From the IMG/VR virus record IMGVR_UViG_3300046516_001816, positions 62,001 through 126,000 of that record: a stretch of DNA of 64,000 nucleotides; one strand, written 5' to 3'. Positions 1 through 62,669 of the stretch are shown here, in pieces (position 1 is the stretch's first letter; each line of letters begins with the position of its first letter). The translations under genes were made by a program, and so were the position numbers. The notes beneath the pieces are model-generated. The model was not told the origin of the DNA. It ran no database searches and saw only the letters and a list, made by a program, of their open reading frames with translations.

Positions 1-4
1 TGTG

Positions 5-37
5 CCTAGTCATCCCCCCGGGTGACTAGGTCTTTTT
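5..37 (+). terminator. Intrinsic terminator of the upstream (out-of-window) unit
   Basis: Stem CCTAGTCAT(5-13)/GTGACTAGG(22-30) followed by TCTTTTT. Confidence 0.8.
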
Positions 38-59
38 GCCGGCATGTGGTTGATTAGTA

Positions 60-430
60 TAAAACTTATCGCGTTTGTATATGTTACGACGGAGTGCCAT
101 GCTCCGTGTAGGAAGGGTGTTGATGCGTGCTCCTCGGGCTTTTGGTGGCGGGCGCGGGCAGCAACACTAATGGGATCGGCTAAACCCATTTGCTAAGTGT
201 CGAAAGATGACGACAGCGAGAATCTCGTTGGGGAACGAGAAGACGCCAACCAGGAAGGGTTGAAGCTGGTTTCTTTAAAGGTGGTGTGCCAAGGCTTTTC
301 CTTGGGGCATGCGGTGCATCACTGAACACGGGGCTGATCGCGCCCTCGTGAAGGAGAAGCTAAGCTCCCGTTCCTGTTTTTCACGTTGGGGAGGGTCTTT
401 CGGGAACCCTCCCCTTCTTTTTTCCTTTTA
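60..430 (+). ncRNA. Candidate structured non-coding RNA of unknown family
   Basis: No credible ORF; about nine consecutive hairpins; bounded by a terminator at 5-37 and its own terminator at 388-430; ends approximate. Confidence 0.45.
388..430 (+). terminator. Intrinsic terminator
   Basis: GGGAGGGT(388-395)/ACCCTCCC(405-412) followed by a long T/C tract. Confidence 0.8.
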
Positions 431-493
431 TGCCGTCTCGCTTATTTTTACCGTCCGGGTGTACCTTATGAGAATAAGACAAGGAGTTCCCCC

Positions 494-2629
494 GTGGCAT
501 TTGACAACCCCTTTGCTTTACAGGCTAATGAATACGTCCGCGATCTGGACGTGTTCAAGCATTACGTGAATCAGACCGTGACGTACCTCGTGAAGATGAC
601 CGGGTGTACGGAAGACGAAGCGAAAGAGTACGTGAAAAAGAACCTCGGTCCCGACGGCAAGTTCCCGTTCAAGGATCCGAAGGTGTGGTATCTCGAGCGC
701 AATGAGCACGGCGATCGGGAAAAGAAAGAAGGCACGCTGGCGCAGTATATCGGTGAGGCGATTCAGAAGGAGCAGTTGATTGCCCCGACCTTCACCACGT
801 ATTTGCCGGTCAAGCAAAAGCAGTCGCTGCTCGCCATGTTCATTGACGCGAACGTGAAGCGACGCAAGGTGGCTAAGCACGCCATGTTCGAAGCCAAGAT
901 GGCGGGTAACGAAGTGCTGCGAATTTTGAAGGATAACGAGCAGACCAATATGAAGCTCTCGAACAATGCTTGTTCGGGCGCGCACGTGTCGGCCTCCACG
1001 CCGCTGTATAACAAGACCGCTCACTCGACGCTGACCTCTAACTGCCGGGTGACCGCAGGCTATGGCTCGGCCAATAACGAGAAGTTCCTGAACGGCAATC
1101 GGCACTATTGGTCGCCGGACATCGTGAAGTACAATATCACCTCGATCATCAACAACACGGACTATGTGGCGATTCGCCATGCGATGGATAAGTTTGACAT
1201 TCGCAATCCGTCGGTCGAAGAAGTGATGGACTGCATCGAGTATTCCACCAAGCTCTACTGGTGGGATAAGCGCCATATGCAGTTGATTCGTCAGTATGTG
1301 GAAACATTGACGCCGATCGAGCGCGCGGCGTTTGTCTACACAGGTGACCTGTACCACCTGATGAAATACAACGACGGCGTGGCCCGTACCTTTATCGAAC
1401 GCTTGTCGTTGCCGGTGAAGGTGGCGCATCCAGAACCGGGTCCGGTGATCAAGAACGCCCACGAGGATCATCTGGCGCTGGCTAAACAGTTGCTGCCTGA
1501 TCTGATGCGCGGCAAGAAGTTGGAAGACATCAAGGGCACGGAAACGGAAGGCATTCTGGCGTCGACCGTGCAGCATGTGGCCGATACCGTGACTGCATAT
1601 GCAGATCTGATCAAAGCGTTTTGGGTCACGAAGAATGTCCCGGCGTCGCTTGCGCGCTTTCCGGAATCCATTCGTCGTTCCGCACTGATGGGTGACACCG
1701 ACTCGACCATCTTTACCGTGCAGGATTGGGTGAGCTGGTACAACAACGGTCGTATTGGGTATGATGATCGTTCGTCGGGGGTGGCAGCTACGATGATCTT
1801 TCTGTCAGCCCAGGCCATCGTGCACTTGCTCGCCCGAATGTCGGCGAACTTTGGCGTGGAAGAAAAGCGGACGTTCCAGACCGCGATGAAGAACGAGTAC
1901 AAGTTTGACGTGTTCGTTCCGACGCAGGTGGCCAAACACTACTATGCGCTGATCGGCTGTCAGGAGGGCAACCTCTACAAGGAGTTTGACACCGAAATCA
2001 AGGGCGTGCATTTGAAGTCGTCGAATGCGCCGCGTGCGGTGATGGCCAAAGCGAAGACGATGATGGTGGAGATCATGAACACCGTCATGCGTGAGGAAAA
2101 GATTTCGATCCATAAGTACCTGAAGGAAGTGGCGGACCTCGAACGCGACATCAAGGACTCGATCCTGTTGCGCTCCAGCTACGAGTACTTCCGTTTAGGA
2201 CAGGTCAAGACGGCCGAGTCGTACACCCTGCCGCCGGAGAAATCGAACTTCGCGCACTACACCTTCTGGAACGAAACGTTTGGTTTGAAGTACGGCCAGA
2301 TGCCCCCGCCACCCTTTGGCACGGTGAAGATCTCCGTGAAACTGGACAGCACGACCAAGGTGCGCAAGTGGCTCGCCAAGATGGAAGACCGGCAACTGGC
2401 CAAAAACATCGAAGAGTGGATGATCAAATTCAATAAGAAAGCGATCACGACCTTCCATGTGCCGGAGCAGGTGATTCAGTCGATTGGGATTCCGCCGGAG
2501 ATCATGAGCGAGATTGATATCCGTAAGATCCAGATCGATACGGTGAACGTCTTTTATTTGATACTTCAAAGTTTAGGAATCTATTGCCAGACTGATAAAA
2601 GTCTTCAGCTGGTGAGCGATTTCTATTAA
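494..2629 (+). CDS. Split family-B DNA polymerase, catalytic (palm/thumb) subunit, phiKZ gp50-like
   Basis: PolB motif B-like KLSNNACSG and motif C MGDTDS; GTG start at 494 after SD AAGGAG (481-486); the ORF-track start at 386 lies inside the terminator. Confidence 0.88.
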   Translation: MAFDNPFALQANEYVRDLDVFKHYVNQTVTYLVKMTGCTEDEAKEYVKKNLGPDGKFPFKDPKVWYLERNEHGDREKKEGTLAQYIGEAIQKEQLIAPTFTTYLPVKQKQSLLAMFIDANVKRRKVAKHAMFEAKMAGNEVLRILKDNEQTNMKLSNNACSGAHVSASTPLYNKTAHSTLTSNCRVTAGYGSANNEKFLNGNRHYWSPDIVKYNITSIINNTDYVAIRHAMDKFDIRNPSVEEVMDCIEYSTKLYWWDKRHMQLIRQYVETLTPIERAAFVYTGDLYHLMKYNDGVARTFIERLSLPVKVAHPEPGPVIKNAHEDHLALAKQLLPDLMRGKKLEDIKGTETEGILASTVQHVADTVTAYADLIKAFWVTKNVPASLARFPESIRRSALMGDTDSTIFTVQDWVSWYNNGRIGYDDRSSGVAATMIFLSAQAIVHLLARMSANFGVEEKRTFQTAMKNEYKFDVFVPTQVAKHYYALIGCQEGNLYKEFDTEIKGVHLKSSNAPRAVMAKAKTMMVEIMNTVMREEKISIHKYLKEVADLERDIKDSILLRSSYEYFRLGQVKTAESYTLPPEKSNFAHYTFWNETFGLKYGQMPPPPFGTVKISVKLDSTTKVRKWLAKMEDRQLAKNIEEWMIKFNKKAITTFHVPEQVIQSIGIPPEIMSEIDIRKIQIDTVNVFYLILQSLGIYCQTDKSLQLVSDFY

Positions 2630-7077: not shown

Positions 7078-7085
7078 TTCGAGTA

Positions 7086-7115
7086 AAAATTTACCGAGAT
7101 ACCCCTATGGTATAG
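7086..7115 (+). promoter_or_regulatory. Putative middle-type promoter upstream of chimallin
   Basis: AAAATTTAC (7086-7094) fits the published phiKZ middle-promoter motif AAanntTAC; followed by GGTATAG. Confidence 0.4.
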
Positions 7116-7246
7116 TGAAGAGCACGTCTCTTCATGCCGATCCCATCTGTCTAGGGGTCGGAAGGAAACCCCGGTAATTCCCTTGGACAGTTTTGTAGTA
7201 CTCGTTTTGCCCCAAGGACGCTGCGCGATTCAAAGACGAAATAGGC

Positions 7247-7255
7247 ATATATCAC
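7247..7255 (+). promoter_or_regulatory. Putative early (virion RNAP) promoter core ATATATCAC
   Basis: Motif recurs at 6 intergenic sites; resembles the phiKZ early TATTAC element. Confidence 0.6.
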
Positions 7256-7329
7256 CTATCTGACACTAATACGAGAGTGTAGTGTTCGCGCGATCATTAA
7301 CTCTGTTTAAAACTGAAGGAAACGAAATC

Positions 7330-9297
7330 ATGGGCATCAACTCCCCGGAAAACAATCAAGCACAAACGTCGATGGGTCAGGCACTCGGGCGCGCCCAGGA
7401 ACAGGCCGCCGGTTCGAATGCTGGCACGACCCAGCAACAGACGTTTAACCAGCCGCGTGGTCAAGCGGGTCAGGCTCGTCCGCGTCTGGCAGACTTCGGC
7501 CGTGTTTCGCGTGCGGCGTTCAGCCGTAACCCGCAGAGCGACGTCATCACGAAGCTCAGCAACGCGCTCACCGAAATCTACAAGAACGGCGCGCAGATCG
7601 ACAAGTCGTTCGACGTGACGCTGATCCCGATCGACTACAACAACACGCGTACGCTGGTGAAGTCGTGTATCGTCGTCGCGGTTCGCGATCTGCAAAACCC
7701 GGACAACGGCGTCGCGTACCACACGCTCGTGCTGGAAGGCTCGAGCGAGCCGATCCAGAACGACTTCCAGATGATCGGTAACACGAACATCGAAATCACG
7801 AAGGTGACGGGCGACGTGTGGACGCCGGTGTTCCAGGGCGAAGTGCAGGAATGGGTGCAACGCGCATTCCCGGGCAAGAACCTGCTGCCGGTCGACGCAG
7901 AAGTCGTGTACAGCAACTTCGACGTCGAAAACCACAACCGCGTGCATCAGCTCGCGATGAACGCACTGGCCGCTTGCGCGACCGAGCTCGACATCCGTGC
8001 GGGTGGCGTGGACATCGACCTGGGTGCAGTGGACCAGGACAACACGCTGACCGTGCAAATGTCGTTCAACAACGCGCAGACGGAAGACGTCGCAGGCATG
8101 CCGCTGCGTTCGGACATCGTGATCGACTTCCGCGCAGGCGGCCAGCCGATCCCGAATCAGCCGGGCTCCAACACCCGTGTGTCGACGCTGTCGCGCATCT
8201 CGGGCTTCATGGATCTGGTCTGGATGCCGGCGCAGCCGCAGCAGCAAGCGTTCAATCCGTGGGTCGCGCAACAGCAAGTCGCGCCGTCGCCGGACGAGTT
8301 CAAGCGCTACATCCCGCGTTTCGTGATGACCGATCTCGAATCGCAAACGCTGCTCACCACGCGTGCTGAACTCCTGGCACTCGTGACGGCGTTCACGCTG
8401 CGTGAAAACAACGCGTGGGTCGAGTCGTTCCGTCCGTCGCCGGTGCAGGTCGAAGGCGTGGACTGGAAGGACATCGGCGCCGTGGGTATCGAGGCGAACT
8501 TCGATCGCAACCCCAACGGCTTCGGCTCGCGGATCGACACGAAGAGCGACCAGTTCCAACGCGGTCAGAACTCGGCAGCCGACTACCTGATGCGTCTCGT
8601 CGCATCGGTGTTCCAGCCGAAGCTGATGCTGTCGCTCGACATCCCCGAGTGCGGTCCGCAAACGTGGTTCACGTCGGTGTTCGCCGCAGCTGGCGAAACG
8701 CAGAACGCGAACAGCGCGCATGCGACGGAGTTCATCATCAAGGAAGCGGACAAGCTCACGCATGGTCGTTTCCTGAAGCACTTCCCGGCAAACGCGCGCG
8801 TCACGGTCGATGAAAACAACCGCATCTTCAAGGGCTACTGGATCGACCGCAACGGTCACATGCGCAGCCTCGACGAGATCGATTACCTGGCCGTGCTCAA
8901 CATGGTCGGCGATCGCGATCCGGAACTGGCACGCGAATGGTCGGACAGCTTCGCGCTCACGGGCGTGCCGCTCGAGATCCGTCTGGACAAGCGCCGTAAG
9001 ATCATCAACGGCATCCTTGGCCAGAACAACGTGCACATCAAGGGCTTCGCACGCCGTGTCACCTTCGAGCCGGCATTCGTCGACGCGTTGGTCGCAGCAT
9101 GCAAGGAAGTGGGCCTCACGATGCGCACGATCGCACCGTACGCAGAGCTGAACACGTACGAGCGTGGCGTGAATCCGTACGCCGCACAAGCAGCGCTGGA
9201 CGCATCGGGCTACACGTCCGGTCTGTTCAACCGCGGCTTCGCGGGCTCCAACCAGGGCCAGTTCGGCAACCGCGCAGGCTTCTCGCGCTGGGGTTAA
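7330..9297 (+). CDS. chmA: Chimallin, major phage-nucleus shell protein (phiKZ gp54/PhuN-like)
   Basis: 655 aa with disordered Q/G-rich N-terminus and aromatic/Gly C-tail (FGNRAGFSRWG); extreme high-expression codon bias; immediately upstream of nvRNAP beta-prime-N as in all chimalliviruses; ATG at 7330 after SD GAAGGA. Confidence 0.85.
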   Translation: MGINSPENNQAQTSMGQALGRAQEQAAGSNAGTTQQQTFNQPRGQAGQARPRLADFGRVSRAAFSRNPQSDVITKLSNALTEIYKNGAQIDKSFDVTLIPIDYNNTRTLVKSCIVVAVRDLQNPDNGVAYHTLVLEGSSEPIQNDFQMIGNTNIEITKVTGDVWTPVFQGEVQEWVQRAFPGKNLLPVDAEVVYSNFDVENHNRVHQLAMNALAACATELDIRAGGVDIDLGAVDQDNTLTVQMSFNNAQTEDVAGMPLRSDIVIDFRAGGQPIPNQPGSNTRVSTLSRISGFMDLVWMPAQPQQQAFNPWVAQQQVAPSPDEFKRYIPRFVMTDLESQTLLTTRAELLALVTAFTLRENNAWVESFRPSPVQVEGVDWKDIGAVGIEANFDRNPNGFGSRIDTKSDQFQRGQNSAADYLMRLVASVFQPKLMLSLDIPECGPQTWFTSVFAAAGETQNANSAHATEFIIKEADKLTHGRFLKHFPANARVTVDENNRIFKGYWIDRNGHMRSLDEIDYLAVLNMVGDRDPELAREWSDSFALTGVPLEIRLDKRRKIINGILGQNNVHIKGFARRVTFEPAFVDALVAACKEVGLTMRTIAPYAELNTYERGVNPYAAQAALDASGYTSGLFNRGFAGSNQGQFGNRAGFSRWG

Positions 9298-9512: not shown

Positions 9513-11048
9513 ATGGGCATTCACATGGAGATCATCAGCCATGATCAGATCTTCGACCAGTATCTCTCCAAAGAGCCAATCATCATCAACGATCTGTCCG
9601 ACATTTCCGAGACGGATCGGGAACGTAACGATCGCCTCATTTTCACGAAGTACGACCTGATTAACTCCGATCTGCTGTCGAACATCCCCTCGTGCGATTG
9701 CGGTAATACGATTGGCGCCGATAAACTGGGCAATGGGAAGGACATCCCGCCCGTGGAGTGTCCGGACTGTCACAAGCCGGTGAAAGAGCTGCATCAGCAA
9801 GACCTCGAGCCCCTGATCTGGTTGCGTGCGCCCATGGGCGTGAAAGCGCTGATCAACCCGATCATCTGGACCATGCTCGCGGGCAAGAACGGGTTCGAGA
9901 AATCGAACTTCGATGTGGTACGCTGGATCTGCGATACGTCGTATAAACCGCAGGCGGTCAAAGAGCCGCCCGTGGTGGACTACATTCGTAAGGCCGGGAT
10001 TCCGCGCGGCTACAACAACTTCGTCGAGAACTTCGACGAGATCATGGACTTCATGTTTAACCTGAAGTTCTACAGCAAGAAGAAGTTGGCCCCCTTGAAG
10101 CAGCTGATCAAGGAGTATCGGCATGCGGTCTTTAGCACGCATTTGCCGCTACCCAACCGCTCCTTGCTGGTGCTGGAAGAAACGAACCACGGCACCTACG
10201 TGGACCCGACTGCACCGATTGCAGTGAATGCGATTCGCATGATGGTGGGCATCGATGGGCCGCTGTCGGTCCATACGCCGCGGGTGAAGGAAAACCGCAC
10301 GATCAAGATGATCATCGAGACGGCGAACTTCTACGACGAGAACAGTCGCACCGTGCTCGCCAAGAAGGAAGGCATCTTCCGTAAGCATATCTTCGGCACC
10401 CGGTCGCACTTCAGCTTCCGCGCCGTGATTTCTTCGCTCACGGATAACCATCGCTACGACGAAATCCACATCCCGTGGGGCATCGGGGTGGCGGTGTTCG
10501 AGCTGCATTTGCAGAACATGCTCAGGCGCCGCGGCTACACTCCGTCGCAAGCCAATGCGTTCTTGGCTGAACATACGCAGAAGTACCATCCGATGTTGGA
10601 TGAGATGTTCAACCTGATCATCAGTCGTTCGCCCATTGGTGGCGGCGTGCCGTGCGTGCTGCAACGTAATCCGTCGCTCGCGCGTTCATCTGCTCAAGCC
10701 ATGTTTATCACGAAGGTGAAGACCGACGTGAACATCCCGACGATCAGTATGTCGATTTTGTCGGTGGTGGGCTTCAATGCGGACTTCGACGGCGATCAGC
10801 TGAACTGCACGTTGTCGCTCGATCACGTGACGGCCAACGATCTGTACCGCCTGGCACCCCACCAGTCGGCTTTCGATCTGAACGCCCCGCGTACCATCTC
10901 GCGCAACCTCTCGAAACCGAAGACGGCGATTGCCACCTTCTCGAACTGGCTGCACTGGGACCAACCTGAGACGCCGGACCCGGCGATCCTGCAACGGATG
11001 AATATGATTCCGGAGTGTGATCCGTACGTGGCCCCGACGATTCATTAA
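9513..11048 (+). CDS. Non-virion RNA polymerase beta-prime N-terminal subunit (phiKZ gp55-like)
   Basis: Zn-binding CDCG...CPDC, catalytic NADFDGD, LQRNPSL motif. Confidence 0.92.
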   Translation: MGIHMEIISHDQIFDQYLSKEPIIINDLSDISETDRERNDRLIFTKYDLINSDLLSNIPSCDCGNTIGADKLGNGKDIPPVECPDCHKPVKELHQQDLEPLIWLRAPMGVKALINPIIWTMLAGKNGFEKSNFDVVRWICDTSYKPQAVKEPPVVDYIRKAGIPRGYNNFVENFDEIMDFMFNLKFYSKKKLAPLKQLIKEYRHAVFSTHLPLPNRSLLVLEETNHGTYVDPTAPIAVNAIRMMVGIDGPLSVHTPRVKENRTIKMIIETANFYDENSRTVLAKKEGIFRKHIFGTRSHFSFRAVISSLTDNHRYDEIHIPWGIGVAVFELHLQNMLRRRGYTPSQANAFLAEHTQKYHPMLDEMFNLIISRSPIGGGVPCVLQRNPSLARSSAQAMFITKVKTDVNIPTISMSILSVVGFNADFDGDQLNCTLSLDHVTANDLYRLAPHQSAFDLNAPRTISRNLSKPKTAIATFSNWLHWDQPETPDPAILQRMNMIPECDPYVAPTIH

Positions 11049-11072: not shown

Positions 11073-11318
11073 ATGGCAGGTGAATATGGTTATGGGCGTG
11101 AGCTCAATGTCGACCACATGACGTTCCCGTCGTCGACCGAAGATGGACCTTTCATCCCTCCGAGTGCGCAACTCAGCTTCAAGCGTTACACGCCGGAAGC
11201 CGTGGAGTTCGGCGCGCGCGACATGCCGCTCAATCTGTACGGCGACAAGGATGACTACAAGCCGTTCGATCCGACGGGTCCTTCCCGTGATGATATCCTC
11301 GACGCATTGAAGAGGTAA
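11073..11318 (+). CDS. Hypothetical protein
   Basis: 81 aa, SD AACCAAGGAAA. Confidence 0.7.
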   Translation: MAGEYGYGRELNVDHMTFPSSTEDGPFIPPSAQLSFKRYTPEAVEFGARDMPLNLYGDKDDYKPFDPTGPSRDDILDALKR

Positions 11319-22104: not shown

Positions 22105-24366
22105 ATGCTTGAGACCCATTCGACACCCATCGCCCAAGCTGTACGGCGACGCGGTGTCCTTCGTGATGAACCCAATGAGCTTTCCCCCGAGCTCTTGAAC
22201 GTGTGCGGGATGAATCCCCTCGACCAGCACAACTCCTCGTCTCGAAAGCAGATGTTCGCCTCGCACTTGGGACAGTGCCTGGTGATCAACGGCGCCACCG
22301 AGAAGCGCTTGCAATCGGGCACCGAGCGTGAGTTCGGTAAGTATACGTTTTCGACGAAGATTCCCGTGGGCTGCAAAGTCATCAAGGTGATCAATCGTTA
22401 TCGGGAAACCTGGGGCCAGGATTCGGTCCTGAAAGACAAGAACGACAATCCCGAGACGGTCATCATTTACGAAGACGTGCAGACCAAAGAAGTCGGCTCC
22501 GTGTCGGTGAAACAGTACACGTCGAACCACTCGTATTTCGGCTTCAAGAACAAGATCAACCCGGTGGTCAACCGCGTGCACCAGGACGACCATTTGCCGG
22601 CGGGTACGATCCTCACCAATTCGCCGTCGGTGACGATGACTGAAGGCGAGAGCCCGATCATCAAGTCGTACAACTATGGGCGCGAATGCAATATCGCGTA
22701 CATGAGCCATCCGGCGACGTCTGAAGATGGGATTTTGATTAGCCAGAAGGTGCTGCGCGAGTTCGGGTTCAAGAAGTACGAAACGCGCGTGGTGGAGTTC
22801 GGCAACAAGAGCTTTCCGCTGAACACCTACGGCGACGAGAATGTCTTTAAGGCGTTCCCGGATATTGGCGAGCCGATCCGGCCCGATGGCTTATTGATGG
22901 CGTTTCGTCCGTACGAGAAAACCGATCAGAGCTACGATCGTGAACTGGCCTTGGTCGAGCAATCGATCTATGACCTGATGGAGATCGATCATGTCTTCGA
23001 CAAACTGGTGTATGCAGACGGCCCCGGTGGGCGTGTCGTGGACATCCGTGTGCATCATGACACGAAGGCCACGAATTCGCCGACACCGATCGGCATGGAC
23101 ACGCAAGCCATGCGTTACGATGCTGCGCGTCGCATCTTCTATCAAGACATCGTCGCGGAATGGCGTCGTCTTGAACGAGATCGCCGTGAATCGCTGCGTA
23201 TCACGCCGGAATTCCATCGCCTGGTGGTCGAAGCGTTGGCAGTGGTGCACGAAACGCAAGAGCGCGTGTTCAAGCTTTACCGCAAGGCGCCGCTTGACGA
23301 TTGGCGCATTGAGTTTGTGATCGAGTACGATGTCATTCCGACGATCGGCTTTAAGCTGACCGATAGCGCCGGTGGTAAGGGCGTCATCTGTCATGTGGTG
23401 CCGGACGACTGGATGCCGACGGACGCCGATGGGAATCGTGCGGACATCGTGATGGATCCGAACTCCACGGTTTCCCGGATGAATCTGTCCCGGAAATACG
23501 AGCAGTATATCAACGCGCACAGTCGTGACGTGACCAAACAGATTCGTAGCTGGTTTGGCATCGAAGCGAAAGATCGGGAAATCATCCACAAGGTGCAGAC
23601 GATCGAGCGTCAGAACAAGCCGCTGTTTGATCAGGCTTGGAAGTATCTGATGCGCTACTACGAGATCACCACGCCGATCATGCAGTCGTGGTTTGAAGCG
23701 GGCGGCTATATGAAGACCGCGGCCGAGCATCTGGCCGAGATCATCAAAAACGGGATCAGCCTGTGGAAGCCGACGAACTGTCCGCGCGAGAGCTCGGACA
23801 TCGTGCGCATGCTCGAAGCGGAGTATCCGTCGACCTATGGACCGGTCACCTACGTGGGCAATTCGGGCCGCCGAGTCACGACCAAGGTGAAGGTGCGCAT
23901 TGGCAGCGTGTATATCATCCTGTTGGAGAAGACCGCAGACGATTGGTCCGCGGTGTCCTCCGGTCGCACGCAGCATTACGGCGTGTTGGCGCAAGTGGGC
24001 AACCAGGACAAGTATACGCAGCCGTATCGCAGCCAGCCGATTCGTGCCTTTGGTGAAGCTGAAATCCGGATTGCGGCGTCCTACGCCGGCCAGCGGGTCA
24101 CCGCGGAAATCATGGACCGTAACAACAATCCCGAGACGCACAAGGCGATTGTCGAAGCGATTCTGGATGCGGAGGAACCGAGCAATATCTACAACGCCGT
24201 GGACCGTGCGAAGATCCCGTACGGCGGCTCGAGACCGCTGCAACTCGTTAAGCACATCCTGGCGTGTTACGGCGTGCGGTTTGTGTATACCCCGTACAAC
24301 GCACCGAAGGTCGATTATCGGACCTTGCCGCAGCAGACGGGTCATGCGTCGTTGACCGCGCACTAA
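22105..24366 (+). CDS. nvRNAP beta C-terminal subunit (phiKZ gp71-73-like), uninterrupted
   Basis: GFKLTDSAGGKGVI, MPTDADGNRADIVMDPNSTVSRMN, FGEAE motifs of RpoB. Confidence 0.92.
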   Translation: MLETHSTPIAQAVRRRGVLRDEPNELSPELLNVCGMNPLDQHNSSSRKQMFASHLGQCLVINGATEKRLQSGTEREFGKYTFSTKIPVGCKVIKVINRYRETWGQDSVLKDKNDNPETVIIYEDVQTKEVGSVSVKQYTSNHSYFGFKNKINPVVNRVHQDDHLPAGTILTNSPSVTMTEGESPIIKSYNYGRECNIAYMSHPATSEDGILISQKVLREFGFKKYETRVVEFGNKSFPLNTYGDENVFKAFPDIGEPIRPDGLLMAFRPYEKTDQSYDRELALVEQSIYDLMEIDHVFDKLVYADGPGGRVVDIRVHHDTKATNSPTPIGMDTQAMRYDAARRIFYQDIVAEWRRLERDRRESLRITPEFHRLVVEALAVVHETQERVFKLYRKAPLDDWRIEFVIEYDVIPTIGFKLTDSAGGKGVICHVVPDDWMPTDADGNRADIVMDPNSTVSRMNLSRKYEQYINAHSRDVTKQIRSWFGIEAKDREIIHKVQTIERQNKPLFDQAWKYLMRYYEITTPIMQSWFEAGGYMKTAAEHLAEIIKNGISLWKPTNCPRESSDIVRMLEAEYPSTYGPVTYVGNSGRRVTTKVKVRIGSVYIILLEKTADDWSAVSSGRTQHYGVLAQVGNQDKYTQPYRSQPIRAFGEAEIRIAASYAGQRVTAEIMDRNNNPETHKAIVEAILDAEEPSNIYNAVDRAKIPYGGSRPLQLVKHILACYGVRFVYTPYNAPKVDYRTLPQQTGHASLTAH

Positions 24367-40365: not shown

Positions 40366-40390
40366 AAAGTCACATCTATCCTGTGACCAC

Positions 40391-40435
40391 CCTCAACTCC
40401 AGAGGCCCGTCTCATTGGGTTCTCTGGGGTTGGGG
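40391..40435 (+). terminator. Long hairpin terminator
   Basis: CCTCAACTCCAGAG.../...CTCTGGGGTTGGGG then CTTT. Confidence 0.6.
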
Positions 40436-40480
40436 GCTTTACTCCGTCACGTCACTTTTTGTACACCAGGATAGATAACC

Positions 40481-41308
40481 ATGAGCGCGCTGCCGAGCGG
40501 GACGACCAACGCCCAAGCCAAACTGATTCAACGGGCACTCAACGAAAAAACCGGCCTGAACCTGACTGTCGATGGCAATTTTGGCCCGATGTCGGTGAAC
40601 GCCTTGAAAGCGTACCAACAACTGAACCATCTGCCGCAAACGGGCATCTACGATGCAGCCACTCAGGGGCTCTTGGCGCCCTTCATCGCGCAGAAGTACC
40701 TGACCCTTGCCGACTATCAGCAAGCGGCTCAGGCGCTCTCTCTGGACGTCGCAGCGGTACAAGCAGTCTGCACCGTCGAGACCAGCGGCGCGGGCTTCTT
40801 CAATAACGGCCAATGTACGATTCTTTACGAGCGCCACCAGATGTTTCGCACGCTCGGCACGGTGATGTCGCCCGCTCAGGTGCAGCAACTCTCCGCGCAG
40901 TATCCGAACCTGGTGAACGCAACCCCCGGCGGGTATATCGGCGGCGCCGCTGAGTGGGGTCGTCTCACGCAGATGGAATCGATCCTCACCGGCATGGGTC
41001 TGGACGAAGGCCTGGCGATGCGCTGCTGCTCGTGGGGGTTGTTCCAGATCATGGGCTATTACTACATCCAGTGCGGCTATCCGAGCGTGAAGGAATTCGT
41101 GGCGGCCCTGCAAGTCTCCGAGCACAACCAGTTGCTCGCGTTCGTCGAATACCTCAAGGACATGAACGGCGGCTCGATGCTCACGGCCTTGCGTAACCAT
41201 GATTGGACCGGGTTTGCCAATCAGTACAATGGCCGCAACCAGCACGCCCAGAACAACTACGACGGCAAGATGGCAGCGGCGTATCAGGCGCTCGCCGGTC
41301 ACGCGTAA
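40481..41308 (+). CDS. Modular endolysin: PG_binding_1 plus DUF3380/N-acetylmuramidase domain
   Basis: N-terminal IQRALN...VDGNFGPMSVNALKAYQ; catalytic VETSGAGF, ILYERH, SWGLFQIMG, FANQYNG. Confidence 0.88.
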   Translation: MSALPSGTTNAQAKLIQRALNEKTGLNLTVDGNFGPMSVNALKAYQQLNHLPQTGIYDAATQGLLAPFIAQKYLTLADYQQAAQALSLDVAAVQAVCTVETSGAGFFNNGQCTILYERHQMFRTLGTVMSPAQVQQLSAQYPNLVNATPGGYIGGAAEWGRLTQMESILTGMGLDEGLAMRCCSWGLFQIMGYYYIQCGYPSVKEFVAALQVSEHNQLLAFVEYLKDMNGGSMLTALRNHDWTGFANQYNGRNQHAQNNYDGKMAAAYQALAGHA

Positions 41309-61289: not shown

Positions 61290-62669
61290 GTGGAATTTGA
61301 ACAATCGGCCTTGATGTTTGAAGTGAACCAGATTCTGAATGGTGGCGCCAAGCCCGTGCAGTATAACTTGAGCGCCGAGATTCTGGTGAATACCACGGGG
61401 AGCGTGACGAGTCCGCTGAAGATTTTGAGCGTGGACTTAAAGCGCAATTACCTCGATGAGTATTCGGATGTCTTGATTGTGGAGATGGCCATTCCTGCGG
61501 GTCAGTATGCTTCGCTGATCTACCCGTATAAAAACAATCTGGACATTTCGCTGACCTACACGCCACTGAATGAAACCGGCGACGCCACCAACACGGCTTT
61601 AGCGCCGAAGTCGGAAACGTTTACGGCTACGCTCGTGGATACGGGGTCGCCGATCATGGAACAAAACGGCTTTAATACCCCGACCGCATACAACCTGGAC
61701 TTGGCGAACATCGTGAACGTCAAGTTCCAGTTGGTCAATAAAGCGCTCGAGCAGATGCGCATGATTGAAGTCGGGCAGATCTTTCGGGGCGCCACCGTCG
61801 ATGACGTGATCAAGACGGTGCTCACGAATGCATCGCAAGCCACCAGTGTCGATGGGCAGCGTACCGTCCAGGGCGTCACGATGCACAAGTCGTCCAACCA
61901 GACGCCGCGTGAGCACATTGTGATTCCCCACGGCGTGAAGCTCGTGGACGTGCCGCAGTATATCCAGAAGTATTGTGGAGGAGTCTACAATGCAGGCATG
62001 GGCTACTATTTGCAAGGCAATCAGTGGCATGTCTATCCGGCGTTGGACACCACGCGCTTTAACCAAAGCGAGACCACCCTTACGCTCATTAATCTCCCGC
62101 AGAACAAGTTCTCAAATGTTGAGAGGACTTATCGCGTCTCAGGTGGAAACCTGGTGGTGATGGCGACTGGTAATGTGAAGTTCCGCGACCCGAGCAATCA
62201 GCATCAGCTGAACGCCGGTAACGGGATTCGCTTTTCCGATGCCAGTAAGTTCATGGGCGGGTTTGTCGATGTGCTGAAAAATAAAGCACTCGCCTCACGG
62301 GGTGGCAATAACAATGAGTTCGTGGGCTTTCAGCGACCCAATGGCAATAACAATGTGTCGCGCTCCACGAACCCTATTACGTCCAATTCCCTGGAAGAGT
62401 ATTCCAAGGTTGCGCGGGCGATGGGCTCGGTGATTCAATTGGAGTGGCAGCATTCCAATCCCGATCTGATTACGCCCGGCTTGCCGACCGAGATTCTGTA
62501 TATGGATCACGACACGATTCAGCAGCTCTCGGGTGTCGTGGTGGGCGTCCATCATTACACACATCTCATGGGGCAGGGCTTCTCGGCCATGCGGTATGGC
62601 ACCGTCAGTACCATCGCTGTGTTTATCCAGCCTGCCGATCAATCCGGTTCTACCAATAGCACACCTTAA
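61290..62669 (+). CDS. Virion structural protein, probable baseplate hub (phiKZ gp101-like)
   Basis: 459 aa, SD TAAGGAGG; beta-rich; hub assignment from synteny and recalled literature. Confidence 0.58.
   Translation: MEFEQSALMFEVNQILNGGAKPVQYNLSAEILVNTTGSVTSPLKILSVDLKRNYLDEYSDVLIVEMAIPAGQYASLIYPYKNNLDISLTYTPLNETGDATNTALAPKSETFTATLVDTGSPIMEQNGFNTPTAYNLDLANIVNVKFQLVNKALEQMRMIEVGQIFRGATVDDVIKTVLTNASQATSVDGQRTVQGVTMHKSSNQTPREHIVIPHGVKLVDVPQYIQKYCGGVYNAGMGYYLQGNQWHVYPALDTTRFNQSETTLTLINLPQNKFSNVERTYRVSGGNLVVMATGNVKFRDPSNQHQLNAGNGIRFSDASKFMGGFVDVLKNKALASRGGNNNEFVGFQRPNGNNNVSRSTNPITSNSLEEYSKVARAMGSVIQLEWQHSNPDLITPGLPTEILYMDHDTIQQLSGVVVGVHHYTHLMGQGFSAMRYGTVSTIAVFIQPADQSGSTNSTP

Follow-up and report, generated by a model that had tools for sequence, protein, structure and literature searches.

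A structured RNA without a known family, inferred from covariation, between the SH3DP and DNA polymerase genes of nucleus-forming-type jumbo phages

In a jumbo phage of the nucleus-forming type, the spacer between the SH3DP gene and the divergent family-B DNA polymerase gene contains a gene for a heavily folded non-coding RNA, with an inferred length of about 350 nt, which matches no known RNA family, is maintained by base-pair covariation in seven related phages, and carries an invariant loop complementary to the ribosome-binding sites of the phage itself. The analysis was carried out on a 64,000-nucleotide stretch (positions 62,001 to 126,000 of the IMG/VR record IMGVR_UViG_3300046516_001816; hereafter, the window), belonging to a 285-kb genome in which this RNA gene is single-copy. 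Positions 46-443 of the window are non-coding and have homologues in six other jumbo-phage contigs (loci L005, L006, L007, L009, L011 and L037), always downstream of the SH3DP gene (PF20287) and upstream of the polymerase gene (PF20286). A preliminary description, made from the sequence alone, had pointed to a hairpin-dense candidate RNA lying between two + strand terminators without a credible ORF, and this observation is confirmed here.

Regarding the borders of the element, the upstream intrinsic terminator (4-37, + strand) has a 12-bp stem (4-31) followed by CTTTTT, and it ends the transcript of the SH3DP gene (PF20287, E 6e-31), which finishes 110 nt before the start of the window. The second one (388-426, +), the predicted terminator of the RNA, consists of a stem at 388-415 with a UUCG-type loop followed by TTCTTTTTT, with the U-tract at 416-426. 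Although a consensus terminator scan did not call this second structure, it is evident in the sequence and in the predicted folds, and its stem covaries among the homologues. Immediately after it, TTTATGCCGTC (427-437, +) is a late-promoter-like motif of the TATG type for the polymerase gene and is not part of the RNA. The word TTATGCCG occurs 39 times in the genome, nearly always just after a GC-rich hairpin and upstream of genes, the same type of hairpin as that of the RNA terminator preceding most of these sites. Taking into account that phiKZ late promoters are T(-3)ATG(+1) (PMC7598289), this motif fulfils the sequence rule of that class, its promoter activity being predicted only. The polymerase gene follows at 494-2629 (+), with a GTG start, an AAGGAG ribosome-binding site at 481-486, and a match to PF20286 with an E value of 3e-247.

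No reading frame in the region is credible, the longest stop-free frame being 59 aa. No peptide is conserved among the seven homologues, substitutions are spread evenly over the three codon phases, and the indels are 1-2 nt long, so that a small protein-coding gene is not supported. The presence of a minus-strand gene using CCAAGGAA (the complement of UUCCUUGG) as its ribosome-binding site was also considered and dropped, since the frames are short or shifted between close relatives. The folding energy is modest and not strand-specific (z = -2.5 on the + strand, -2.6 on the - strand, and -2.1 for the core 86-380), and thermodynamics alone would not carry the claim, whereas covariation does.

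Two covariance models support about 100 base pairs organised in two domains. The first model (R1) was built from the window plus L005, L007 and L037, and it finds L006, L009 and L011, which had been left out, at E values of 5e-5 to 1e-3. In the resulting alignment (A8), which covers the 3' domain, 88.6% of the cells are paired, against 37-49% in slid controls, and 32 of 49 pairs change on both sides, against 11-14. The second model (R2) was built only from L005, L007 and L037, and it finds the window, L006, L009 and L011 at E values of 5e-4 to 7.5e-3. In its alignment (A11), covering the 5' domain, 94.5% of the cells are paired, against 36-47%, and 26 of 51 pairs change on both sides, against 2-5. 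None of 500 shuffles reached these values in either case. Overall, 58 of 100 model pairs show changes on both sides, as expected for a conserved structured non-coding RNA. The structure contains 99 G·U cells, which would be mismatches on the other strand, and pairing falls to 75-79% when it is read from the - strand, indicating that the RNA is read from the + strand.

The 5' domain comprises hairpins P1 to P5. P1 (86-109) is formed by 89-95/101-107, extended by 86-87/108-109, with a GCCAU loop closed by U·G; 98% of its cells are paired and 6 of its 9 pairs change on both sides. P2 (117-167) is a long irregular hairpin (117-122/162-167, with an inner helix at 125-130/148-153) whose length varies between lineages. 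P3 (171-188; 171-174/185-188) is 98% paired, with 5 of 7 pairs changed on both sides. P4 (189-220) is a two-tier hairpin (189-194/215-220 and 199-202/211-214) followed by the conserved GAA at 220-222. It has to be noted that the model left window positions 195-220 as an insert, and the pairs of P4 were read from the sequence and from the minimum free energy folds, although the homologous helix covaries in the other six sequences. P5 (223-240) presents an invariant GGGG tetraloop (230-233), it is paired in 100% of the cells, with a compensatory change between GUU/AAC and GAU/AUC, and UGGGGA.CG is invariant in all seven sequences.

The 3' domain (251-376) is a multi-branch structure closed by two long-range helices, P6 (251-259/367-376, with G370 bulged) and P7 (264-267/363-366 plus 268-276/353-361), in which 7 of 9 and 8 of 13 pairs, respectively, change on both sides; for instance, the pair 267:363 is U-A, G-C or C-G depending on the lineage. 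Inside it, the long hairpin P8 (280-323), with 7 of 7 pairs changed on both sides in one of its two model helices, carries at its apex the invariant UUCCUUGG (298-305). P9 (327-350), with a conserved UGAUCGC loop (335-341), is present in the window and in L005, L007 and L037, but deleted in L006, L009 and L011. The invariant nucleotides of the RNA are concentrated in loops and junctions.

Seven of the ten helices of the preliminary description are supported. Helices 90-95/101-106 (P1), 116-122/162-168 (P2), 169-174/185-190 (P3), 223-229/234-240 (P5) and 327-334/342-350 (P9) agree with the covariation-supported structure, 198-202/211-215 (inner P4) rests on the fold of the window and on its covarying counterpart in the other six sequences, and 126-132/150-156 and 287-294/300-309 (the apex of P8, whose register differs between lineages) are partly supported. 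However, 248-253/266-271 and 353-356/365-368 are not supported, and their strands form instead the long-range helices P6 and P7. The 9-mer AGGAAGGGT, described as repeated (110-118 and 252-260) and able to pair with 371-376 through either copy, occurs exactly twice in the genome, but only the second copy matters structurally, being the 5' strand of P6 and pairing, as suggested, with 367-376; the first copy is not conserved. Of the two promoter-like elements proposed, TAGTATA lies inside a conserved AT-rich block, whereas TATATGTTAC is not conserved in the relatives.

This AT-rich block (54-70, +), TTAGTATAAAACTTATC, is conserved in all seven homologues directly 5' of the first covarying hairpins, and resembles the AT-rich, -10-centred early promoters of phiKZ-like phages, such as TATATTAC (PMC7598289, PMC7058600). 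It is promoter-like only by sequence, and the transcription start is inferred about 10 nt downstream, near 72-78. It is not a widely reused motif in this genome, and TAAAAnTTAYC, considered as a general promoter class, was discarded because it occurs at about the chance rate, with only a few intergenic look-alikes; a sigma-70 promoter scan found none. The extent inferred for the RNA is 72-426 (+), the 5' limit coming from where conservation begins and the 3' limit from the terminator, whereas models R2 and R1 cover the core 86-376.

With respect to its classification, the RNA belongs to no described family. A permissive search with the 4,227 models of Rfam 15 (including riboswitches, T-box, 6S, RNase P, tmRNA, group I/II introns, GOLLD, ROOL, HEARO and OLE) gave no match at E<=10 in window positions 1-500, and none at E<=1 in 42 kb from five relatives' loci (L003, L004, L005, L009 and L015), and ARAGORN detected no tRNA or tmRNA gene in the whole 64-kb window. 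The resemblance of CCGUUGGGGAACGG to E. coli 16S helix 45, and that of GGGUGGUA to the T-box core, were considered but are not supported by Rfam and were dropped. BLASTN searches with the RNA from three lineages against 50,697 GenBank phage records gave only chance hits of 35-45 nt, a 22-base gapped motif scan of IMG/VR returned only four loci already in the set, and a metagenome scan with the polymerase added one homologue, L037. R1 and R2 gave nothing significant against the isolates RP12, FLC4-3B and FLC9 and about 25 other polymerase loci, the best hits, in the spacer of locus L008, having E values of 0.7-1.4.

As for the interpretation given in the preliminary description, an independently transcribed structured phage RNA that could not be assigned to a known family, it is supported only in part: the structure, the strand and the absence of a family are sustained by the data, independent transcription is plausible but inferred, and for the roles suggested (a sponge for a host RNA-binding protein, a ChmC ligand or a nuclear scaffold RNA) there is no evidence for or against, although the GGA-rich AGGAAGGGT repeats that might suggest a sponge are not conserved as sequence. 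The autonomy of the RNA is suggested by the conserved AT-rich block, by its own terminator, and by the promoter-like motif of the polymerase located after that terminator. Moreover, opposite-strand genes are inserted before the RNA in L006 and after it in L009 and L011, but never inside it. In addition, a rhizosphere metatranscriptome (run X1) contains one 201-nt contig matching window positions 165-365 with 3 differences, and nothing from the other 3.4 kb compared, including the flanks of the RNA and the polymerase sequence. However, this contig is shallow (word depth 2.8) and has no direction, DNA carry-over cannot be excluded, and it maps no transcript ends.

Taken together, the analysis itself establishes the non-coding nature of the region, the two-domain covarying fold (P1-P5 and P6-P9) on the + strand followed by an intrinsic terminator, and the location of this single-copy gene between the same two genes in seven related jumbo-phage genomes, whereas its exact ends, its transcription from the block at 54-70, its accumulation as a stable, discrete RNA, and any function, including pairing with mRNAs and effects on translation, are inferred.

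Our best, although tentative, proposal is that the RNA acts in trans, this being the weakest step of the interpretation. The invariant UUCCUUGG at the apex of P8 has a second copy at the P4 apex in three relatives, and a further copy lies just upstream of the window, in the SH3DP 3' UTR. In this view, this anti-Shine-Dalgarno-like motif would pair with the (CC)AAGGAA ribosome-binding regions of the phage's own mRNAs, about 40 of which carry exactly CCAAGGAA, the preferred ribosome-binding site of the phage, and pairing would mask or organise these leaders and so tune translation, while the elaborate covarying fold would present these loops and probably also binds a protein partner. Several data are in agreement with this idea. 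TTCCTTGG is invariant in all seven sequences, with two copies in L005, L007 and L037; AAACCAAGGAAA-type words are among the most over-represented 9-mers; 42 of 81 CCAAGGA sites sit 2-14 nt before an ORF of at least 50 aa; and CCAAGGAA is found 41 times against 6 for the control in this genome, and 35 against 9 in the genome holding L007. Furthermore, TTCCTT is present in 12 of 17 SH3DP/polymerase spacer lineages, against 3.8±1.6 in dinucleotide shuffles (0 of 300), and in the window's family and in the two other aligned spacer families it sits at a hairpin apex.

However, several considerations put this mechanism in doubt. The genome holding L011 keeps UUCCUUGG but shows only weak enrichment of CCAAGGAA (19 against 9, on both strands), and there the complementarity reduces to the generic AAGGA(A/G) core. 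The motif was picked after looking, the 17 lineages are not independent, a few of the hits lie in terminator U-tracts, and the register of the apex helix differs between lineages. Eight bases of complementarity to a very common word is weak specificity, and about 100 conserved base pairs is far more structure than a simple antisense RNA needs. Moreover, UUCCUUGG and the GGGG loop are both invariant, and they could instead form an internal loop-loop contact (GGGG with CCUU) or be protein-binding sites.

Almost as possible is that the RNA is a protein-binding scaffold or a component of a ribonucleoprotein, a reading that covers the sponge and scaffold ideas, in which the conserved fold and the invariant loops (GGGG, UUCCUUGG, UGAUCGC and GCCAU) would be docking sites for one or more proteins, without base-pairing to mRNAs. 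Candidates include a phage RNA-binding protein such as ChmC, the neighbouring SH3-fold protein, a host RNA chaperone or a ribosomal protein. About 100 covarying base pairs and a multi-branch architecture are typical of RNP or ribozyme-class RNAs rather than of simple antisense RNAs, and the SH3DP gene, whose product has a fold related to nucleic-acid-binding SH3 domains (PMC7824862), is always the upstream neighbour. Nevertheless, no partner is identified, and the GGA-rich repeats that would suggest a CsrA/RsmA-type sponge are not conserved.

A replication-linked function is less likely. The RNA would be a transcript that primes or marks the origin of phage DNA replication, or a cofactor of the SH3DP/polymerase machinery, taking into account that it sits between the two genes of the polymerase module, that long structured spacers at or next to this module recur in many lineages, and that phiKZ-like phages with the divergent polymerase lack both DnaG-type and AEP primases yet keep RNase H1, priming by their RNA polymerases having been proposed (PMC7824862). 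However, the RNA ends at a strong terminator rather than running into an unwinding element, cumulative GC skew mostly follows gene orientation and shows no clear turning point at this locus, being uninformative as an origin marker, cargo genes can separate the RNA from the polymerase gene, and synteny may simply reflect descent.

It is also doubtful that the element is a cis-acting leader of the polymerase mRNA, a long 5' UTR whose terminator or anti-SD sequence would control polymerase expression by attenuation or by masking the polymerase ribosome-binding site. In four of the seven genomes it lies directly upstream of the polymerase gene and ends in a terminator, and UUCCUUG can pair with the polymerase site CAAGGAG, giving 7 pairs including one wobble. 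Against this, the TATG-type promoter-like motif recurring genome-wide lies between the terminator and the polymerase gene, two opposite-strand ORFs separate the RNA from this gene in L009 and L011, no riboswitch or T-box match was found in Rfam, and the X1 contig covers the RNA but no polymerase sequence, so that a riboswitch or attenuator co-transcribed with the polymerase gene is not supported. Finally, a DNA-level element made of hairpins (a protein-binding or recombination site) or an unrecognised small protein gene is very unlikely, since, although the folding z-score is similar on both strands and some relatives have long stop-free minus-strand frames, the G·U pattern favours the + strand RNA, frames are not conserved (L005 and L007 differ by 1-2 nt indels) and show neither codon periodicity nor a conserved peptide, and the covariation of helices spanning more than 100 nt is hard to explain for duplex DNA.

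Among described systems, the large ornate RNAs GOLLD and ROOL are also carried by phages and prophages, are several hundred nucleotides long, have many covarying helices in multi-branch domains, and are stand-alone genes with no agreed function, for which cryo-EM shows RNA-only assemblies (bioRxiv 10.1101/2024.12.08.627333). The RNA described here does not match their Rfam models at E<=10, is smaller (about 350 nt against roughly 580-800 nt), occupies a fixed position in a replication gene module of phiKZ-like jumbo phages, and carries an anti-SD-like apical motif. The sRNAs reported in the phiKZ and 201phi2-1 transcriptomes, for example sRNA005, the 5'UTR sRNA of the gp182 homologue, are likewise encoded by jumbo phages and conserved by genomic position across genera (PMC11512511), but they are under 250 nt, mostly derived from 5' UTRs by premature termination, lie at another locus (a tail gene), and are supported by a sequence alignment and single-sequence folds instead of covariation over about 100 pairs. 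Trans-acting antisense sRNAs and cis anti-SD elements that occlude Shine-Dalgarno sequences, such as RNA-OUT and the fourU/ROSE thermometers, share a short pyrimidine-rich sequence exposed at a hairpin apex and complementary to the SD region; here, the complement is the consensus leader shared by dozens of phage genes and not one target, the RNA is much larger and more structured, and regulation is only hypothesised. Primer or origin transcripts, such as ColE1 RNA II and the T4 and T7 origin transcripts, are structured transcripts of a few hundred nucleotides next to replication genes, as is this RNA in a phage group that lacks a primase (PMC7824862), but the latter ends at an efficient-looking intrinsic terminator, GC skew gives no evidence of an origin at its locus, and it has no sequence or structure relation to RNA II.

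The relevance of this RNA lies in the fact that nucleus-forming jumbo phages, although under intense study, have been examined almost entirely for their proteins, the non-coding RNAs reported for them so far being short and mostly derived from 5' UTRs. RNAs this large and this tightly constrained usually turn out to be ribozymes, RNP cores or RNA-only assemblies. If the motif acts on Shine-Dalgarno sequences, this would be a new way for a virus to control translation, and if the RNA serves replication, it would bear on the question of how these primase-less phages prime DNA synthesis.

The same locus holds unrelated, independently alignable structured spacers in other lineages of jumbo phages, in which UUCCUU-type motifs recur, suggesting a conserved function with rapidly diverging sequence, although nhmmer profiles link the spacer families only through the terminator and promoter segment. 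A more speculative and rather unlikely possibility, not excluded by the data, is that the SH3DP-polymerase junction of a broad clade of phiKZ-like jumbo phages of the nucleus-forming type would be a reserved slot for a fast-evolving, highly structured RNA whose one constant feature would be an exposed anti-Shine-Dalgarno-like loop (UUCCUUGG here; UUCCUUUCCUC, CUUUCCUUUA and even CCUCCUUUCU in other lineages). Such an RNA would act as a global mimic of the 16S rRNA tail or as a decoy for Shine-Dalgarno sequences, reprogramming which mRNAs reach ribosomes during infection, or, alternatively, would be the missing priming RNA of a primase-less replication system.

Two minor observations complete the description of the locus. 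The word TTAAGTG, initially considered as an early-promoter word, corresponds to a stop/start gene junction, and soil and rhizosphere sequencing runs contain more relatives, one of these runs (run X5) containing an 821-nt contig that spans the locus.

The virus record, of which bases 62,001-126,000 form the window, is 284,983 bp long. Its polymerase is 68-71% identical in protein to those of uncultivated jumbo phages, and about 68-71% identical in DNA to those of Ralstonia phages RP12/RP31/FLC4-3B/FLC1-1B and Burkholderia phage FLC9. These are phiKZ-related jumbo phages (PMC5468394). The gene starting at window position 494 (GTG start, with ribosome-binding site AAGGAG at 481-486) is the divergent family-B DNA polymerase (PF20286, E 3e-247), whereas the gene that ends 110 nt before the window is SH3DP, the small SH3-fold protein usually encoded next to that polymerase (PF20287, E 6e-31; PMC7824862). 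The element studied therefore sits in a spacer of about 600 nt inside a conserved two-gene module.

The observation made in the preliminary description, a hairpin-dense stretch without credible ORFs between two + strand terminators, was confirmed: both terminators are present and nothing in between looks coding. However, the folding energy is only modestly better than that of shuffled sequences, and equally so on both strands, with z-scores of -2.5 on the + strand and -2.6 on the - strand for 60-430, and of -2.1 for the core 86-380. A folding energy no better than shuffles had been set beforehand as a refuting condition, and by this criterion thermodynamics would leave the case open. A permissive search of Rfam covariance models and a tRNA/tmRNA search with ARAGORN found nothing.

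Although BLASTN sees no relatives, nhmmer showed that the stretch is homologous to non-coding DNA in five IMG/VR loci (L005, L007, L006, L009 and L011) and in one metagenome locus (L037). Together with the window, these sequences form three lineages: lineage A, the window itself; lineage B, comprising L005, L007 and L037, which are 74-84% identical to each other; and lineage C, comprising L006, L009 and L011, which are 89-95% identical to each other. In every case the element follows the SH3DP gene, and in the window and lineage B it directly precedes the polymerase gene. In lineage C, opposite-strand cargo flanks the RNA: in L006, a 260-aa minus-strand ORF (L006:2569-3351) lies between SH3DP and the element, whereas in L009 and L011 a pair of overlapping minus-strand ORFs of 102 aa and 120 aa (L009:3196-3863) lies between the element and the polymerase gene. 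Insertions thus occur on either side but never inside, as expected for a self-contained unit. The element is single-copy in the genome.

No translated frame is conserved beyond short stretches that mirror the conserved nucleotide blocks. Substitutions between close relatives are spread evenly over the three codon phases, and indels are 1-2 nt long. A tempting minus-strand reading takes CCAAGGAA, the complement of the conserved UUCCUUGG, as a ribosome-binding site, but this reading fails, since the window has only a 5-codon frame after it and the frames in L005 and L007 are shifted relative to each other by a 4-nt indel.

Taking into account that MAFFT alignments were too unreliable across lineages, two covariance models were built and all sequences were realigned with Infernal. 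The first model, R1, covers helices P5 to P9 (window 217-379) and was built from the window plus lineage B, with a hand-set structure. It recovers all three lineage-C sequences, which had no part in building it, at E 5e-5 to 1e-3 and at the right place, hairpin P9 being cleanly deleted in them. On the resulting alignment, 88.6% of cells form standard pairs, against 37-49% when the 3' partners are slid by 1-3 columns, and 32 of 49 pairs show changes on both sides, against 11-14 when slid and 19.1±2.4 in shuffles, with 0 of 500 shuffles reaching the observed values. The second model, R2, covers P1 to P5 and was built from lineage B alone, using its RNAalifold consensus. It recovers lineage C and the window (window 84-244) at E 5e-4 to 7.5e-3, and on that alignment 94.5% of cells pair, against 36-47% when slid, and 26 of 51 pairs change on both sides, against 2-5 when slid, again with 0 of 500 shuffles reaching the observed values. 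It has to be noted that these alignments are fitted to the models and so lean towards the structure, although the held-out lineages and the slid controls argue that the signal is real. The structure contains 99 G·U cells, and pairing drops to 75-79% when it is read from the minus strand, so the + strand is the RNA.

In window coordinates, the 5' domain begins with P1 (89-95/101-107, loop GCCAU), followed by P2 (117-122/162-167, with inner pairs), P3 (171-174/185-188) and P4 (189-194/215-220 and 199-202/211-214). The pairs of P4 were read from the sequence and the single-sequence folds, because the model left this stretch of the window as an insert. After a conserved GAA comes P5 (223-229/234-240), with an invariant GGGG tetraloop. 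The 3' domain is closed by P6 (251-259/367-376, with G370 bulged) and P7 (264-267/363-366 plus 268-276/353-361), which enclose P8 (280-323), with the invariant UUCCUUGG at its apex (298-305). P9 follows at 327-334/342-350, with the loop UGAUCGC, and the terminator lies at 388-415, followed by a U-tract. The closing helices are the clearest case of covariation. The 5' strand of P6 reads CAGGAAGGG in the window, CAGUUUGAG in L005 and GAAGACGA in L009, each matched by its own 3' strand, and the fourth pair of P7 is U-A, G-C or C-G depending on the lineage. As to the helices listed in the preliminary description, seven are right or nearly right, whereas the local hairpins 248-253/266-271 and 353-356/365-368 lose to P6 and P7. 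The second copy of the repeat AGGAAGGGT does pair with TTCCTG, as had been suggested there for either copy, but the first copy is not conserved.

The terminator hairpin followed by TTTATGCCGTC is not special to this locus. TTATGCCG occurs 39 times in the 285-kb genome, almost always right after a GC-rich hairpin and ahead of genes, which matches the T(-3)ATG(+1) late promoters of phiKZ (PMC7598289). The recurring unit, a GC-rich hairpin plus TTTATGCCG(T/C)C, is found at window 427-437 and also at window 21600 (-), 30733, 33454 (-), 41322 (-), 46990 and 57629, and looks like a combined terminator and TATG-type late promoter, followed by a short leader of the form GCCGTC...CTAAACCAAGGAAA. We read 427-437 as the putative promoter of the polymerase gene itself, so the RNA is not needed as its leader. 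At the 5' side, conservation starts at an AT-rich block (54-70, TTAGTATAAAACTTATC), followed, in lineage B and in L009/L011, by a small covarying hairpin that precedes P1. This places the inferred start site near 72-78. The block also resembles the AT-rich early promoters of these phages, which are centred at -10 and include TATATTAC in phiKZ (PMC7598289, PMC7058600), although it is not a common word in this genome, which leaves the class of the putative promoter unresolved. A look-alike of this block (GTAAAAATTTACC at 7083-7095) begins a second intergenic gap of 219 nt (window 7078-7296), which contains a long CCCTTGG ... CCAAGG hairpin before the gene that starts at 7331, and may be another small RNA or a structured 5' UTR.

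A search for sequencing runs with a 3-kb query listed none, but a 401-nt query listed twelve soil and rhizosphere runs, four of which were compared with 3.6 kb around the locus. One metatranscriptome (X1) holds a single 201-nt contig on window 165-365, with 3 differences, and nothing on the SH3DP gene or on the 1.6 kb of polymerase gene compared. Although this fits an RNA that outlasts the mRNAs of its neighbours, the depth is low, contigs have no direction and DNA carry-over cannot be excluded. A second RNA run (X5) holds an 821-nt contig of a relative, which runs from the SH3DP 3' end to just past the terminator and shows that more homologues exist.

The invariant unpaired or weakly paired letters are GGGG, in the P5 loop, and UUCCUUGG, at the P8 apex. 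A second UUCCUUGG sits at the P4 apex in lineage B, and CCUUGG sits there in lineage C. A further UUUCCUUGG lies in the SH3DP 3' UTR just before the window: at L001:1489-1498 (the window's own locus, window -11 to -2), an extra GTTTCCTTGG, complementary to CCAAGGAAAC, sits in the 115-nt 3' UTR of the SH3DP gene just before its terminator, whereas lineages B and C have no such UTR. UUCCUUGG is the exact complement of the favourite translation-initiation word of the phage. AAACCAAGGAAA-type 9-mers are among the most over-represented in the genome, and 42 of 81 CCAAGGA sites sit 2-14 nt before an ORF of at least 50 aa. These ORFs include RNA polymerase beta-subunit genes: three ORFs (window 9513-11048, 11073-11318 and 22105-24366) match phage multisubunit RNA polymerase beta subunits, and all three use the CCAAGGAA ribosome-binding site. 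Of these, the 81-aa ORF matches only positions 164-233 of the profile that the 753-aa ORF matches in full, so it may be a duplicated or split gene fragment. CCAAGGAA occurs 41 times against 6 for the reversed control in this genome, and 35 against 9 in the genome holding L007. In the genome holding L011 the enrichment is weak (19 against 9), although its ribosome-binding sites still have the AAGGA(A/G) core.

The distance from SH3DP to the polymerase gene depends on how close the polymerase is to that of the window, being 350-600 nt, or more when extra genes intervene, in most loci whose polymerase is at least 42% identical, 80-130 nt in the loci at 35-40% identity, and 201 nt in phiKZ. The phiKZ gp49(SH3DP)-gp50(polymerase) spacer (L057:20378-20578, phiKZ 40377-40577) has a terminator hairpin followed by TTTTATG, then about 100 nt ending in a second hairpin (GGGTACCC...GGGTACCC) followed by AUUCUUUCCUUUUCUUUUUU, and it may be a short counterpart of the spacer RNA. 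Two further families of long spacers near the polymerase gene (e.g., L015:3563-4000, and L003:1842-2278 and L002:1505-1930) align within themselves and carry their own covarying structures and pyrimidine-rich apical loops. In family D (loci L014, L015, L017 and L020), 95.5% of cells pair, against 35-42% when slid, and 38 of 84 pairs change on both sides, although the structure was derived from the same alignment. In family E (RP12, RP31, FLC4-3B and FLC1-1B), 25 of 94 pairs change on both sides, and the spacer precedes a non-SH3DP ORF upstream of the polymerase gene. Neither the covariance models nor sequence profiles link these families to the RNA of the window beyond the terminator and promoter segment, and homology is therefore unproven. 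Even so, TTCCTT is present in 12 of 17 spacer lineages, against 3.8±1.6 in dinucleotide shuffles (0 of 300), although the motif was chosen after looking, the lineages are not independent and a few hits lie in terminator U-tracts. In families D and E, as in the family of the window, it sits at a predicted hairpin apex. Related words appear in other spacers, namely UUCCUUUCCUC in L015, and CCUCCUUUCU in L012, which equals the usual 3' end of bacterial 16S rRNA.

What the analysis shows, with high confidence, is a new, conserved, single-copy, + strand structured RNA gene, whereas how it works, including any pairing with mRNAs or binding of proteins, is inferred. The interpretation offered in the preliminary description, an independently transcribed structured phage RNA outside known families, is partly supported, in that the structured RNA holds while its separate transcription and its role remain inferences. 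No description of this RNA was found: transcriptome papers on phiKZ and 201phi2-1 report only short sRNAs at other loci (PMC8244752, PMC11512511), and two 2026 preprints on mining non-coding elements do not mention jumbo phages. Since it failed every family membership test applied, it is regarded as a new RNA class of unknown function rather than being assigned to a described family. As a tentative first choice, the anti-SD-like loops would pair in trans with Shine-Dalgarno or leader regions, and a purely protein-binding scaffold is possible to almost the same degree. The GGGG and CCUU loops could also contact each other within the RNA, which would explain why both are invariant without any trans target. 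A replication-linked role is attractive because these phages lack a primase but keep RNase H1 (PMC7824862), but it is unlikely; there is no positional evidence for it, and GC skew is uninformative. A cis leader of the polymerase gene is slightly less likely still, and that the region is not a functional RNA at all is very improbable.

Outside the window, crude ORF calling indicates other unusually long gaps (400-577 nt) without ORFs in this otherwise dense genome, at genome positions 204181-204757, 232829-233308 and 224297-224696.
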